DNA of 64,000 bases from Octopus sinensis. Lineage: Eukaryota. The translations under genes were made by a program, and so were the position numbers. Each line of letters starts with the position of its first letter. Within the stretch, counting starts at the first letter, position 1. Shown in pieces: positions 11,027 to 52,029 of the stretch. The stretch is taken from positions 64,790,001 to 64,854,000 of the forward strand of contig NC_043006.1 in NCBI RefSeq assembly GCF_006345805.1, read 5' to 3'. The notes beneath the pieces are model-generated. The model was not told the DNA's origin. It saw nothing but the letters and a program-made list of their open reading frames with translations, and did not search any database.

Positions 11027-11168
11027 GTTATATATATATATATATATATATATATATTATATATATATATATAATTATATATATATATATATATGTATGT
11101 ATATATATATGATATATATATATATATATATATATATATATATATATATATATCTATATATATATATT
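11027..11168. repeat. (TA)n microsatellite flanking PLE
   Basis: Directly visible. Confidence 0.95.
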
Positions 11169-11259
11169 GATAAAACGGTAAGATCAAAAGAAAGAAAGAG
11201 ACCTCAATATATGTAAATAGAGGAAATTTATCTATACAATATGGTACATTACTCGTAGT

Positions 11260-11325
11260 CAAGATAAAACTCTGAGTTTTCAGATGCCGAAGTGGAAATC
11301 CACAACACCATCTCTCGTTATCTGG
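11260..11325 (-). ncRNA. Hammerhead-like three-way junction in PLE 3' UTR (inverted arm)
   Basis: rc: CAGATAA-CGAGA-GATG..CATC-T-GAAAACTC-A-GAGTT-TTATCT; stems I/II/III pair, CUGANGA box degenerate. Confidence 0.45.
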
Positions 11326-13586
11326 CTATTTGAAAACGTATGAAAAAATTACCGTTAAAAATGAGGGAAATTACTCTGTTATAACTCTGCTTTGCCTGCG
11401 TATATACATCGCTCGCATTTCGTCATAAAAATATATGAAAAATACATAAAAATATATAAAAATATATAAAAATATATAAAATTTCTTGGGACATAACACA
11501 GAAAGCATGTTATCCGTTTTCTTTAGGGACCAAAAACGTAACAGAAATTTAGTCACATGTGGGCATGATCCGAAAGCTTGTCCTTGTATTTAGACATGTG
11601 TAGGGTCTAAGCTGCTTTTCCAGATAAGCCATTCTAATGTCGCATAAAACCGCACCTTCCGCTGCGTTAGTATAGGGCTTACATCTGGCCAAATCTTCCA
11701 TGTATGTTATAATCGACACCTTTATCTCTTAAAGACCAAATGATTGGATAATTGTGTCGCTTTTCTTTTGTCCAGTGCCTAAAGCTCAAAGTGTGGTTAT
11801 TGAACCTGGCCTTGAAATTACCCTCTGTCAGGCCACGTATTTCTTCGTCGAAAGGTGTCTTTAGGGTTATAGAGTTACGGTAGCTTATATATGATGGTCT
11901 TGGACATGCAAGCTCCATTTAGCGGGCACAATTCTTTATCCTGCATGAACAGCTGTTTTCTTCTTGTGTTTTTTGTATGTTATGATTGATTATGTGTTTT
12001 AAAATGGTAGTTGAACTAATACTAATTTTTAATTGTGTCTATTAAAGAGTTTCCTATAAGAATGGTTAACTGGAAAATGTCATCTATCAGTGCATGAACA
12101 GCTGTTTTCTCTTGTGTTTTTTGTATGTATGATGATTATGTTTAAATGTAGTTGAACTAAAACTAATTTTTAAATGTGTCTATTAAAGAGTTTCCTATAA
12201 GCATGGTTAATGGAAAATGTCTATCTATCAGTGCTAGGAAATATTTACCTATATTGAAGGCCACCTCGGGCAGGCATCTGTGATCTAATTGGACTCTTTC
12301 TCCTAGATACCTTCGGTAAGACATCCCTAACGTACATTTCGCCATCTACAAGATGATGCCCTGCCTTAACAGCTAATACAATGGACCAGCACAGATCGTT
12401 TTAGGAAGGATATTATCAGTTATGAAACACTTCGGACTTAAGTATACTATAGACACAACCTGACGGTTGTCAATTTCTTAGACGTTTCCTTAGATCTTAA
12501 TAATAATATTATAAGCCTTATAGGAAGCCCATGATAGATAAGTTATATTATGTAGGGTTCATGCCATCCCCCTATAGTATTCAAAAATTTAGTAAAAATA
12601 TTAGTAAGAGATTTCTAGCCTCTCATGTAATGAGGACATCTTCAATAGCGTTGCCCAGTTTATAAAAAGCTTTAAAAGATAGTGGTTTTAGCAAAAAAAT
12701 AAAATTACACCTATCACCAGCCCAACAATAAGGAAAAGGAATAATAGAAATAGGAAGGTCATCTGGTTTACGCCCCCCTTACTCACCCGAGGTGGCCTCA
12801 ATATAGGTAAATATTTTCCTAGCATGATAGATAGACATTTTCAGTTAACCATGCTTAAGGAAACCTCTTTAATAGACACAATTTAAAAATTAGTTTTAGT
12901 TCAACTACCAATTTTTAAAACATAATCAATCATAACATACAAAAAACACAAGAAGAAAACAGCTGTTCATGCAGAATAAAGAATTGTGCCCGCTAAATGG
13001 AGCTTGCATGTCCAGACCATCATATATAAGCTCCGTAAACTCTATAACCACTAAAGACACCGTTTCGACGAAGAATACGTGGGCCTGACAGAGGGTAATT
13101 TCAAGGCCAGGTTCAATACCACACTTTGAGCTTTAGGCACTGGAACAAAAGAGAAGCGACACAATTATCCAATCATATTTGGTCTTTAAGAGATAAGGTG
13201 TCGATTATAACATACAATGGAAGATTTTGGCCAGATGTAACCCTATACTACGGCAGCGGAAGGTGCGGTTTATGCGACATGGAGAGAGATGCTTATCTGG
13301 AAAAGCAGCTTAGACCCTACCACATGTCTAAATACAGGACAGAGCTTTTCGGATCATGCCCACATGTGACTAAATTTCTGTTACGTTTTTGGTCCCCTAA
13401 AGAAAACGGATAGAACATGCTTTCTGTGTTATGTCCCAAGAAGATTTTATATTTTTTTATGTATTTTTATATAATTTTTATGACGAAAAATGCGAGCGAT
13501 GTATAAGTACGCAGGCAAAGCAGAGTTATAACAGAGTAATTTCCCTTCATTTTTAACGGTATTTTTTCATAACGTTTTCAAATAGC

Positions 13587-13650
13587 CAGATAACGAAGAG
13601 ATGGTGTTGTGGATTTCCACTTCGGCATCTGAAACTCAGAGTTTATCTTG
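13587..13650 (+). ncRNA. Hammerhead-like three-way junction in PLE 3' UTR (sense arm)
   Basis: CAGATAA-CGAAGA-GATG..GTGG/CCAC..CATC-T-GAAACTC-A-GAGTT-TATCT; CGAAGA equals CUGAAGA lacking U4; palindromic stem III. Confidence 0.5.
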
Positions 13651-13680
13651 ACTACCGAGTAATGTAACATATTGTATAGA

Positions 13681-13835
13681 TATATATTATATATATATAT
13701 GTGTATGTATATATATATATATAGATATGTATGTATAATATATATATATATATGTATGTATACTATAATATATATATATATGTATGTAATATATATATAT
13801 ATATATATGTATGTATATATATATATATATATGTA
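13681..13835. repeat. (TA)n-rich microsatellite
   Basis: Directly visible. Confidence 0.9.
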
Positions 13836-14043
13836 TAAATACAGAATTTGAGGAAAGGAAAACAATCCGAGTAAAGGGTTGTTAAAAACAATCCTGATGC
13901 CAATGGGTTTAGCAAATATACTGATAGGATGTTCCTCAATATATATGTATAAGCAGTCTTATAAATTAAAAAGTCAGAAAAAGAAAATGGAGAAGAAAGA
14001 TCAAAAAGATGCAAGGTTTCTCCATTTTTTGGTTTTTAATTTT

Positions 14044-50077: not shown

Positions 50078-50569
50078 TTAATTTAATCAAGAGAAATTTG
50101 TTGATGTAAGTTGAAGCTGTTGTTTGTAGTATGAATGTGGGATGTGATAGATGTACCACTGGAGATAACAGCTGAGGGTGGACAGAGTGGAGATTAGTGG
50201 TATGTTATGTGCTACTAACTTTCAGTAACATAGGATGGGTAGTGGTATGATGTGGGTAAGAGTGCGGAAGAGTTTGAGTCAAACTTGGTATTTATTCTAT
50301 TGGTCTCTTTTGCCAATCCGCTAAGTTACAGAGGAATATAAACAAACCAACATTGATTGTCAAGCAAGAGGGTGTGGGGTGACAAACAAATACACAAACA
50401 TACATATGGACAAATATATATATATATATATATTTTACTCTTTTACTTGTTTCAGTCATTTGACTGCAGCCATGCTACATAGTTTGGGGTTCAGTCCCAC
50501 TTGAGCTAATTTCTTCTACTATTGCCCCAGGTCAACCAATGCCTTGTATGTGCAGAAACCCAATGGCAC

Positions 50570-50800
50570 TGAGGCGTGGTTAATGCCAGTGCCACCTGAC
50601 TGCCTCCCAAACCATGCTAAGGCATGTAAAAAGCACCCACTACACTCTTGGAGTGGCTGGTGTGAGGAAGGGCATCCAGCTGTAGTAACTTTGCCAGATC
50701 AGATTGGAGCTTGGTGCAGCCTGCTGGCTTGTCAGTCCTCAGTCAAACTGTCCAACCCATGCCAGCATGGAAAGCAGACGTTAAACGATGATGATGATAT
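50570..50800 (+). mobile_element. SINE family B
   Basis: Ends GCAGACGTTAAACGATGATGATGAT. Confidence 0.85.
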
Positions 50801-50864
50801 ATATATTAATATCAAGCAGTGAGAATGAGTGTTCAACACTGCATTAGTGGATAAATATTCTTTA

Positions 50865-50935
50865 ATACAGTTCTATATTTAAGAAATGGTGTGTTAACAA
50901 CAAACGAGATGAGGACAAATATCCATCAAATGTAA
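50865..50935 (+). mobile_element. 71-bp family E insertion: inverted 3' end plus post-cleavage fragment, 14-bp TSD
   Basis: TSD ATAAATATTCTTTA at 50851-50864 and 50936-50949; 50868-50888 is the rc of the E 3' end; 50891 onward is GTGTTAACAACAAACGAGATGAGGACAAATATCC. Confidence 0.8.
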
Positions 50936-51109
50936 ATAAATATTCTTTATTTTTGTATTAAGGCTACCATTGTTTTCATAAAGAGGGAAATCTCTTAACA
51001 GTTATCAAGTCTCCTGCAGAGGAACATTTGTACTCGAGACAAGTACCAACATTCACATGTGGCAGGCTTGTTAACCCACAAATAAAGAATATATATATAT
51101 ATATAATGT

Positions 51110-51535
51110 GCAGGAGTGGCAGTGTGGTAAGTAGCTTGCTTACCAACCACATGGTTTTGAATTCAGTCCCACTGTGTGACACTTTCGGCCAGTGTCTTCT
51201 GCTGTAGCCTAGGGCCGACCCAAGCCTTGTGAGTGGATTTGGTAGACGGAAACTGAAAGAAGCCCGTTGTATATATATATATATATATATATATATATGT
51301 ATATGTATGTATGTATGTATGTGTGTGTGTGTCTGTGTTTGTCCCACCAACATCGCTTGACAACCGATACTGATGTGTATTTATGTTCCCGTCACTTAGC
51401 AGTTTGCCAAAAGAGAATGATAGAATAAGTACTAGGCTTCCAAAGAATAGGTCCTGGGGTCGATTTGATCGACTAAAGGTGGTACTCCAGCATGGCTGCA
51501 CTCAAATGACTGAAACAAGTAAAACGGTAAAAGAG
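51110..51535 (+). mobile_element. SINE family A, full length
   Basis: Near-consensus head, (TA)/(GT) centre, body, AGTAAAACGGTAAAAGAG tail. Confidence 0.9.
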
Positions 51536-51630
51536 AGTATATAAATATATATATATATCAGATCGATTGTCGAAATACATAAACCTAGAGGAGAATTACA
51601 CTCTAAAATGTAGAGCAATTAATATTATAG

Positions 51631-52029
51631 TGGGTAGGCCAGCTTATGGGGTTACCTTGGGTTTCTTGCTCATAAGGGGCTTAGCCTTACAGGGTATCTT
51701 TAGATCCCAAACACTGCTGGCCTGAGACCTCTTTAAAATATGGAGGGAGAAAGCCTCATTTTTAAGGTTAAAACCATAGGTGATCATCTCCCTTTGCTAT
51801 TGTCCATCGATCTTCAGTTGGACTACCATCTTGCAGTCAACAAAGCACAATGCATAAGGATCCTTGAAGACTCACTCATGCCAGGGATCATCCTGAACAC
51901 CAGGACGGAGATTTTTGGACCATGCTTGCATTTTAGAAAATTCCTGCTGGCTTTTTGTAATCTGCATGGCGGCACTACAGCCAGAAACCAATAGCCAAAG
52001 GAAGACAGCCCCCTAAACTGGCCTACCCA
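51631..52029 (+). mobile_element. Short PLE 3' fragment with inverted copy of its 3' end
   Basis: ILNTRTEIFGPCLHFRKFLL resembles LNTRTELFGSCPHVTKFLL of the 13.3 kb PLE; 51631-51670 is an imperfect rc of 51978-52029. Confidence 0.65.

Follow-up and report, generated by a model that had tools for sequence, protein, structure and literature searches.

A hammerhead-bearing SINE with the insertion anatomy of Penelope-like elements in an octopus genome

Why do two truncated Penelope-like elements (PLEs) and two insertions of a hammerhead-bearing SINE, herein called SINE E, lie in one stretch of octopus DNA with the same head-to-head layout? The window, meaning the whole stretch of 64,000 nucleotides that was analyzed, contains four such units, which an earlier note had described as an antisense copy of the 3' part placed against a truncated 5' end. 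The inverted architecture is real at all four loci (11.2–13.7, 23.7–24.3, 50.9, and 51.6–52.0 kb; Table 1). The shared architecture reaches beyond that first description: every unit is bracketed by one target duplication or by (TA)n, and exactly one of its arms bears a tail. The tail rule holds for 5/5 units compared, and in each of the four window units the two arms are copies of one and the same 3' region. The inverted 5'-truncated copy, the one-sided tail, and the (TA)n targets of PLEs are already published (PMC8557442, PMC11167929); the new part is SINE E. The reading favored here, at a probability of roughly 0.6, is that SINE E is a non-autonomous retroelement relying on borrowed PLE machinery and that the four structures are products of PLE-type integration.

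Table 1. Features of the four inverted units and of the second SINE (positions within the window)
Feature	Position	Strand	Description
Left (TA)n tract, target microsatellite	11029..11166		Adjoins PLE-A
PLE-A tail, 64 nt	11167..11230	-	Inverted arm only; sense TAAATTTCCTC...TTTATCAA
PLE-A short arm	11231..12270	-	Inverted copy of 3' ~0.9 kb; internal 175-nt tandem duplication
PLE-A long arm	12271..13680	+	5'-truncated Hydra-clade PLE, frameshifted
Hammerhead relic in PLE-A 3' UTR	13588..13648	+	AGAUA aCGAAGA G AUGG..CAUC U GAAAC UCAGA GUU/UAUCU
Right (TA)n tract	13681..13847		Adjoins PLE-A
Left target-site duplication, 9 bp	23662..23670		ACCCTTCAA; by comparison with other host-SINE copies
SINE E long arm	23671..23963	-	Full-length: A box TGGCGTAGTGG, B-like box, (AAC/AAT)n, hammerhead module; no tail
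Long-arm hammerhead motif	23729..23774	-	Intact ACGU palindrome; one G>A change weakens helix I
SINE E short arm	23964..24231	+	Sense copy without first ~19 nt
Minimal hammerhead (predicted)	24118..24163	+	GACAC CUGAAGA (A) GGCUG..CAGUC GAAA UGU U/GUGUU
SINE E tail, 28 nt	24232..24259	+	TAATTCCTCATCTCGTAAATATAGAACC; short arm only
Right target-site duplication	24260..24268		ACCCTTCTA
Left target-site duplication, 14 bp	50851..50864		ATAAATATTCTTTA
Antisense copy of SINE E tail	50870..50888	-	17/19 against reverse complement of 24232–24259
Sense 3' fragment of SINE E, no tail	50889..50935	+	Start ≤2 nt from predicted cut (50890/50891)
Right target-site duplication	50936..50949		ATAAATATTCTTTA
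Left (TA)n	51545..51558		Adjoins PLE-B
PLE-B tail, 63 nt	51559..51621	-	Sense TAATTGCTCTACATTTT...
PLE-B short inverted arm, ~45 nt	51622..51665	-	Copy of 3' terminus
PLE-B long arm	51666..52039	+	Endonuclease C-terminus (..RTEIFGPCLHFRKFLL) and 3' UTR
Right (TA)n	52036..52100		Adjoins PLE-B
Second SINE, E2	58686..58905	+	tRNA-like A box, different body, SINE E's 3' ~60-nt module

Judged by their sequence, PLE-A and PLE-B are Hydra-clade PLEs, a clade marked by a C-terminal GIY-YIG domain, a CxCX5C linker, and the CxxC..E and CxH motifs (PMC8557442, section 11). A profile built from the window ORF and its relatives yielded 880 homologues, which bear these marks, and the pseudo-protein of the window aligns to homologues over 97% of its length (E 1e-29). 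One of them, P0001, has a weak Pfam GIY-YIG match (E 0.007), and Pfam gave no match on the window PLE copy itself. The linker of the homologues reads CNCSNPERC (CxCX5C) and that of the window copy CSCRIKNC (CxCx4C), the latter in a frameshifted stretch whose spacing is uncertain from assembly indels; CGLCDMERD and SCPH are present, for the CxxC and CxH motifs sought around the conserved E and N. The long arm of PLE-A holds the RT thumb, the linker, CxC..C, the GIY-YIG endonuclease, and the 3' UTR, and only the thumb of the RT is retained because the copy is 5'-truncated. PLE-B is 5'-truncated as well, and the autonomous PLE that had been postulated is not found in the window. Compared with the Hydra-clade PLEs of Craig et al. 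2021 (PMC8557442), the window copies share the C-terminal GIY-YIG, a putative CxC..C linker, the (TA)n insertion, a putative hammerhead near the 3' end, the inverted 5'-truncated copy on the 5' side, and the one-sided tail. They differ in being 5'-truncated with no pseudo-LTR tandem visible, in the mutated hammerhead core of PLE-A, and in tails of 63–65 nt as opposed to the 30–40 nt quoted for PLEs generally.

In PLE-A, the claimed inverted arm of ~1 kb is recovered by BLAST, which pairs 11231–12270 (−) with 12786–13680 (+) at 88–93% identity over ~1.05 kb; since the sense copy extends to 12271, the unit consists of a short inverted arm and a longer sense arm, the latter without a tail. The arms differ by 10 substitutions in 657 aligned bases, and the other differences are 1-nt indels, mainly in homopolymers. 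The hammerhead relic keeps helix I, helix II, GAAAC, and GUU in the correct order and in the layout of the hammerheads of L004 and L005 (the latter a Hydra-clade PLE of another species), with ACGAAGA replacing CUGAAGA in both arms; an Rfam search of PLE-A gave no hammerhead match. The ~45-nt arm of PLE-B is likewise borne out: 51622–51665 pairs with the reverse complement of 51995–52039 (26/28 in the core, p<0.001). The start of its tail is common to the tail of L005, whose own inverted arm is 745 nt long (97.7% identity), with a target duplication of 10 bp and a tail of 65 nt. In the two PLE units, each of the four outer ends adjoins (TA)n, and 4.8% of window positions lie equally close. A (TA)n preference, as had been suggested, thus holds for the PLEs but not for SINE E, whose targets ACCCTTCAA and ATAAATATTCTTTA are not (TA)n.

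The SINE E palindrome at 23671–24259 is one 589-bp insertion inside another SINE. Its arms stand head to head at 89–97% identity with a gap of 0 bp between them and 17 unpaired nucleotides at the center. The inverted arm described for this locus is present; it is not a copy of the 3' part only, both arms being near-full copies of an element of ~290 nt plus tail. The head carries A and B boxes, in line with the proposed Pol III passenger: the A box TGGCGTAGTGG is an exact fit to TRGCNNAGTGG, and the B box reads GAGTTCCATTCC (GGTTCAATCC in the L240 relative). ARAGORN called no tRNA in this head, as expected for a derived one. At 50.9 kb, a 71-bp insert is bracketed by a perfect 14-bp direct repeat. 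The inversion claimed here stands as an antisense copy of the tail (score 28 versus 12.2 ± 2.3 in shuffles, p<0.001), and an inverted-repeat search finds no arm inside the fragment. SINE E–type loci number four in the window, and relatives occur in three other records. E2 is a simple insertion without an inverted arm; the E-like SINEs of L003 and L240 are full-length, plain insertions that end in a positional counterpart of the SINE E tail.

A descriptor scan of the 64-kb window returns a single hammerhead match, in the short arm of SINE E, versus 0.03 expected per shuffle. The core boxes CUGANGA (here CUGAAGA) and GAAA are in place together with U16.1-H17. CUGAAGA and GAAA are invariant in eight copies from three to four genomes, and the catalytic core shows no change in relatives from at least two further assemblies. 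Folding the consensus by minimum free energy gives helices I and II and nothing else. Pairing in helix II is 90%, with one compensatory exchange of U-A to C-G; with the helices in register, 77% of cells pair, versus 20–45% with the partners slid. An unpaired A or G precedes stem II in 8/8 copies, helix I has only 3 bp in the relatives, and the helix III region of the consensus is GAA-ACGU-U, in which ACGU is self-complementary. PLE hammerheads are known for an unpaired base before stem II, a helix I of 4–5 bp, and paired motifs on opposite strands 100–700 bp apart (PMC4209133, section 5), traits that recur in SINE E, and forms with a very short or absent helix III and a palindromic sequence are active as dimers (PMC4209133, sections 4–5). 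From hammerhead to 3' end, SINE E measures 62–90 nt, resembling the 3' UTRs of L004, L005, and PLE-A. Rfam hammerhead models gave no match to SINE E at gathering score and none at E≤10 in 600 nt; the miss at gathering score carries little weight because the same models miss the clear hammerheads of L004 and L005 at that score. The motif is a credible candidate for a minimal hammerhead of PLE type, as had been proposed. Two junctions only, the start of the sense arm at 50.9 kb and copy b of L184, where homology ends exactly at the predicted hammerhead cut, suggest that the ribozyme may cut some SINE E templates.

SINE E is probably a passenger of PLEs like those adjoining it, whose enzyme would have made its insertions. 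It combines a tRNA-derived Pol III head with a 3' module organized as a PLE 3' end, in the order minimal type-I hammerhead, ~60 nt, and 28-nt terminal tail. A GIY-YIG/RT ribonucleoprotein would nick both target strands a few bases apart, giving rise to target duplications of 9–14 bp, and each 3'-OH would prime reverse transcription of the template RNA. The two cDNAs would converge and be joined head to head to form the inverted arms, one strand being primed at the distal start site (tailed arm) and the other at the proximal one (tailless arm). Both arms would hence arise in one event from two primings. Such a single-event origin is indicated by the single target duplication around the whole SINE E palindrome and around the 50.9-kb insert, and the inverted arm, 10-bp duplication, and tail of L005 are counted in its favor. 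The anatomy, the target duplications, the tails, and the hammerhead motif with its conservation are observed directly, and the both-strand extension and the two start sites are taken from the biochemistry of another PLE. The protein of the latter cleaves and extends both strands, prefers AT-rich DNA for cleavage, and uses two RT start sites, the tail being the stretch between them (PMC11167929). These published activities explain the architecture of the units: in the Anolis Poseidon PLE studied in vitro (Frangieh et al. 2024, PMC11167929), two-strand extension and a start-site spacing equal to the tail predict them. That study differs in concerning one vertebrate PLE with its own RNA and no SINE template, and the hammerhead was dispensable in vitro. 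Arm divergence is 0.015 (K2P) in PLE-A versus 0.04–0.12 in SINE E, so that co-activity with this particular PLE family is not indicated.

An unlikely alternative is that SINE E is an ordinary LINE-dependent SINE with an RTE, CR1, or L2 partner, the inversions being rare by-products (twin priming, template jumps) and the hammerhead a relic irrelevant to mobilization. A 3' module of ~60 nt common to SINE E and E2 is what LINE-partnered SINE families show, plain copies exist (58.7 kb, L003, L240), and SINE E lies outside (TA)n. Comparison of its 3' module with the PLE-A and PLE-B 3' ends likewise gives no significant overall similarity (p = 0.28 and 0.91). The proposed link between SINE E and the PLEs is upheld for the shared architecture but not for a significant 3'-end sequence match. 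Resemblance to the PLE-B tail is confined to the initial 12 nt of the SINE E tail (9/12), in a post hoc comparison. Against a LINE partner stand the one-sided tail with alternative 3' ends 28 nt apart, a published PLE signature (PMC11167929), and a hammerhead with the PLE-specific bulge (PMC4209133). The module is also absent from all LINE fragments within the window. The earlier note had seen no such architecture in its putative RTE and CR1 fragments, and of the inverted pairs of ≥18 nt within 1.5 kb, none touches the Pfam-confirmed LINE RT fragments at 39.1, 44.9, and 57.1 kb or the Pfam-unconfirmed LINE-like C-terminal ORFs at 5.9–7.9 kb.

In L1-type twin priming, two primings occur on opposite strands with one RNA, so that the segment in inverted orientation comes from elsewhere, farther 5' in the template. 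Such insertions share with the window units an inverted portion within one target duplication, but they lack a 3' duplication, whereas in the window units one 3' region is present in both arms, which start from two alternative 3' sites. Twin priming is ruled against for the four units on this ground. A SINE-A copy at 23350–23660 exemplifies the LINE-type pattern, its 5' half being inverted with no duplication.

It is very unlikely that the palindromes are inverted duplications at the DNA level, produced after ordinary insertion by template switching during replication or by fold-back priming and unrelated to retrotransposition. The window does contain examples of such events: the SINE-B palindrome at 22750–23119 is centered on 130 bp of (TA)n, its arms differ by 0 substitutions, include non-SINE flank, and are 3'-truncated on one side, and a (TG)n/(CA)n palindrome adjoins it. 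The four units, however, have no AT-rich center; their arms, which join at 5'-truncated element ends, are free of flanking DNA and lie inside the target duplication, and one of them bears a tail specific to the element, which copying the other arm by fold-back could not provide. The SINE-B palindrome, a MITE pair at 49407–50081, and low-identity SINE pairs are inverted pairs that were absent from the earlier list. The 11 copies of family B include two head-to-head pairs, which look as though they arose by a different route; with four SINE E loci to set against these 11 copies, the window cannot show that SINE E inverts more often than other SINEs.

That each pair represents two independent same-family insertions abutting by chance in opposite orientation is hardly credible: SINEs are dense here, low-identity head-to-head A and B pairs exist (54853–55457, 43758–44119), and the SINE E arms are no closer to each other than either is to the 50.9-kb copy, but one target duplication brackets both arms in place of one per arm, substitution divergence between the PLE-A arms is 1.5%, the SINE E arms directly abut, and the layout recurs four times in the window and in L005.

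As a PLE passenger, SINE E can be set beside two kinds of known hammerhead repeats. The schistosome SINE-like retroposons SMalpha/Sjalpha (Ferbeyre 1998, Laha 2000, cited in PMC8490949) are likewise short Pol III–type repeats with a type-I hammerhead. There, the hammerhead of SMalpha is canonical and recognized by Rfam-type models, whereas that of SINE E is a minimal motif of dimer type, loop-less and with the PLE bulge; head-to-head arms flanked by target duplications and bearing a tail are not described for SMalpha in the literature surveyed. Non-LTR retrozymes and non-autonomous PLE derivatives (PMC4918200; bioRxiv 10.64898/2026.07.22.740005; Chlamys elements, PMC8557442) share with SINE E the non-coding, hammerhead-bearing nature, the proposed use of a PLE enzyme, and a 3' end organized like that of a PLE. 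Retrozymes derive from pseudo-LTRs, form tandem arrays, and lack a Pol III head, whereas SINE E is dispersed, with A and B boxes, an internal (AAC/AAT)n, and target duplications. A classification of SINE E as a non-LTR retrozyme was rejected, as tandem arrays are missing: in the window, copies lie scattered or head to head, and none lies head to tail.

More tentatively, a tRNA-promoter SINE family conserved in at least two to three marine invertebrate genomes might be a dedicated parasite of PLEs, the two target strands being primed at two different RT start sites. If so, the rule of exactly one tail would count as evidence, at the genome level, that a PLE dimer primes the two strands in a coordinated manner, and some templates would owe their ends to hammerhead cleavage. 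Annotation can easily mistake palindromic SINE units of this kind, and PLE tails, for DNA transposons or assembly errors. PLE integration is still poorly understood, and the sole in vitro study reports both-strand extension and two RT start sites. Because SINE E insertions are readable end to end and reveal the start site of each arm, a short Pol III–driven passenger of this kind, with its clean target duplications, would serve as a compact natural reporter of this process. It would also tie together hammerhead-bearing SINE-like repeats, retrozymes, and PLEs, which have so far been linked mainly by their distribution.

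The four inverted structures described in the earlier note are real in their arms and tails, a tail being a 3' extension present on only one arm of a head-to-head unit. They comprise two 5'-truncated pieces of Hydra-clade Penelope-like elements (PLEs), PLE-A at 11.2-13.7 kb and PLE-B at 51.6-52.0 kb, and two insertions of SINE E, a tRNA-headed SINE with a hammerhead module, at 23.7-24.3 kb and 50.9 kb.

Components of the head-to-head units of PLE-A, PLE-B, and SINE E
Feature	Position	Strand	Remarks
PLE-A inverted arm	11231-12270	-	inverted copy of 12786-13680 (+); + copy extends to 12271
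PLE-A 64-nt extension (tail)	11167-11230	-	inverted arm only
SINE E full-length antisense copy	23671-23963	-	abuts sense copy, gap 0
SINE E sense copy, ~19 nt missing	23964-24231	+	
SINE E 28-nt tail	24232-24259	+	sense arm only
PLE-B ~45-nt inverted copy of 3' terminus, then 370-nt sense fragment			26/28 in core, p<0.001

The pseudo-protein of PLE-A (12.3-13.4 kb) retrieves homologues and aligns with them, and the alignment displays the features that Craig et al. (PMC8557442) give for the Hydra clade. A tblastn search of the window with 121 homologues marked PLE-A and PLE-B as the sole regions; Pfam gave no match for the pseudo-protein, and a window ORF had no record in the assembly index. 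The autonomous PLE postulated earlier is absent from the window, which contains no intact PLE. The PLE-A arms exhibit 10 substitutions over 657 bases, and the ~70 remaining differences are indel columns, chiefly single-base and homopolymeric, that look like long-read assembly error and would thus make the insertion a young one. Differing almost solely by 1-nt homopolymer indels, the arms (11231-13680) suggest uncorrected assembly errors; hence, frameshifts in ORFs of the window may be artefacts. PLE-B carries a 63-nt extension on its inverted arm only, and its sense fragment codes for the endonuclease C terminus. For PLE-B, the alternative of a MITE flanked by TA and bounded by terminal inverted repeats was rejected because of this coding interior and because its tail starts like that of a Hydra-clade PLE from another species.

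Hydra-clade PLEs of other species show an anatomy like that in the window. In one of them (L005), the inverted arm measures 745 nt, the target duplication 10 bp, and the tail, again confined to one arm, 65 nt; the tails of PLE-A and PLE-B are 64 and 63 nt long. All three tails start alike, with TAATTGCTCTAC in PLE-B, GTTTGCTCTAC in L005, and TAAATTTCCTCTA in PLE-A. An inverted 5'-truncated copy, a one-sided tail, and a (TA)n bias of PLEs have been described previously (PMC8557442, PMC8969392), so the PLE half of the finding is already known. The proposed (TA)n target preference holds for the PLE pieces, as (TA)n adjoins both outer ends of PLE-A and lies at either side of PLE-B, but does not extend to SINE E, which is not in (TA)n.

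At 23.7-24.3 kb, comparison with other copies of the host SINE shows the whole 589-bp SINE E unit to be bracketed by ACCCTTCAA and ACCCTTCTA; being inside one target duplication, it represents one insertion. At 50.9 kb, a perfect 14-bp direct repeat encloses an insert of 71 bp, which consists of the antisense SINE E tail (17/19, p<0.001) on the left and of the final ~47 nt of tail-less SINE E on the right. The SINE E head contains a perfect A box and a B-like box and is followed by (AAC/AAT)n and the module GACAC-CUGAAGA-A-GGCUG(10 nt)CAGCC-GAA-ACGU-U|GUGUU. Judged by its sequence, this module corresponds to the minimal hammerhead that Cervera and de la Pena described (PMC4209133), with a short helix I, one unpaired base ahead of stem II, and a loop-less helix III formed by self-complementary ACGU, which is suited to dimers. 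The consensus fold consists of helices I and II and nothing else. Rfam searches of the window at gathering score and at E<=10 returned no hammerhead, only microsatellite-driven miRNA noise. The evident PLE hammerheads of L005 and of L004, a further locus, likewise escape the Rfam models at gathering score; a descriptor scan was therefore used instead, giving one match in the window versus 0.03 per shuffle.

Relatives of SINE E come from an ENA assembly of another species (L003) and from two contigs filed as bacterial, CBDHDV010000339.1 ('MAG Rubritalea', L184) and CAXXGD010000052.1 ('MAG Rhodospirillales', L240). Both contigs bear tRNA-headed, hammerhead-bearing E-type SINEs and are almost certainly mis-binned DNA of an animal host; they were the useful yield of 18-mer scans of metagenome and prokaryote collections, where nearly all matches were chance bacterial ones. 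A TE-protein search for more genomic loci enlarged the sample by one locus from Octopus sinensis and by five from a single ENA assembly of another species, with 1 E-like SINE in 105 kb, which is insufficient for a census. In the eight copies compared, the two catalytic boxes and the position of the bulge are invariant or retained, and helix II is 90% paired, with a single exchange of U-A for C-G; L184 also contains two modules placed head to head. A distance of 62-90 nt separates the hammerhead from the 3' end, which resembles the spacing in the UTRs of the PLEs (PLE-A, L004, and L005). Full-length relatives terminate in a positional counterpart of the octopus tail, which hence is the distal end of the SINE RNA. 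Alignment of this tail with the 3' end of L003 and with E2, a second SINE at 58686-58905, was not significant. The tRNA-like head and the body of E2 are its own; it has in common with SINE E only the last ~60 nt, i.e. the 3' module, which would imply a partner common to both.

The window is AT-rich, eukaryotic, and dense in microsatellites and tRNA-type SINEs. A ~3 kb TA/TATG-type microsatellite at 14000-17300, with GC as low as 17%, produces many spurious long ORFs and miRNA-model matches. A Ty3/gypsy pol remnant (RT, RNase H, integrase) at 40446-42700 is ~52-56% identical to proteins of Octopus sinensis and other invertebrate assemblies. SINE B, also found in an Octopus sinensis chromosome locus (L001, GCA_006345805.1), is grouped in tandem and inverted at 2218-2686, 22460-22870, and 43757-44399, with (TTA)n-like sequence in front and (ATT)n as 3' tail.

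With microsatellites masked, inverted pairs of at least 18 nt within 1.5 kb are found at none of the three LINE RT fragments (39.1, 44.9, and 57.1 kb). Other inverted pairs exist. Two ~230-bp piggyBac-like MITEs (TTAACCCTTT...AAAGGGTTAA) at 49407-50081 are inverted, 91% identical, and 216 bp apart, and two SINE pairs of low identity look to have been inserted independently. A SINE-B head-to-head palindrome (22750-23119) is centred on a 130-bp (TA)n; its arms show 0 substitutions over 114 nt and take in 12 nt of non-SINE flank, with the right one truncated at its 3' end. It looks like a DNA-level fold-back at (TA)n, and a (TG)n..(TA)7..(CA)n palindrome lies directly beside it (23120-23190). In a SINE-A copy (23350-23660), the 5' half (reference positions 6-204) is inverted relative to the 3' part (293-430); filler of ~20 nt is present and nothing is duplicated, the classical LINE twin-priming pattern. 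On its inner side, the inverted piece ends at the (TA)n inside the element. SINE E differs from these pairs in kind by its outer target duplication, its tail, and its 5'-truncated ends at the centre. Window counts cannot show that SINE E inverts more often than other SINEs; family B has a raw count of 2 head-to-head pairs among 11 copies.

A purified PLE protein has been shown to cleave and extend both strands, with its reverse transcription beginning at two internal sites, the genomic tail being the sequence between them (Frangieh et al., PMC11167929). Two converging copies with alternative 3' ends inside one target duplication are therefore predicted. The tail is present on exactly one arm in 5/5 units examined (four in the window and L005), from which each target strand would use a different RT start site. 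The rule that the tail is always on the shorter arm holds for 4/4 units in the window and fails in L005; only its presence on exactly one arm was retained. Two junctions coincide with the predicted hammerhead cut, the sense-arm 5' end at 50.9 kb and the loss of homology in copy b of L184, which hints at cleaved templates (n=2).

Of the putative system of a PLE and a ribozyme-processed Pol III passenger, the shared insertion anatomy, the hammerhead motif, and the Pol III head are borne out, but an overall match is not: local alignment of the SINE E module with the 3' ends of PLE-A and PLE-B was not significant. Only the start of the SINE E tail resembles that of PLE-B (9/12, a post hoc comparison), and the arm ages of PLE-A and SINE E differ. 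A search of the accessible literature found no SINE described as combining a Pol III head and a hammerhead with the full PLE insertion signature. Dependence of SINE E on a PLE is the best reading, with a probability of about 0.6. PLE traits being known, the new part appears to be that a Pol III-headed, hammerhead-bearing SINE shows the full insertion signature of a PLE.
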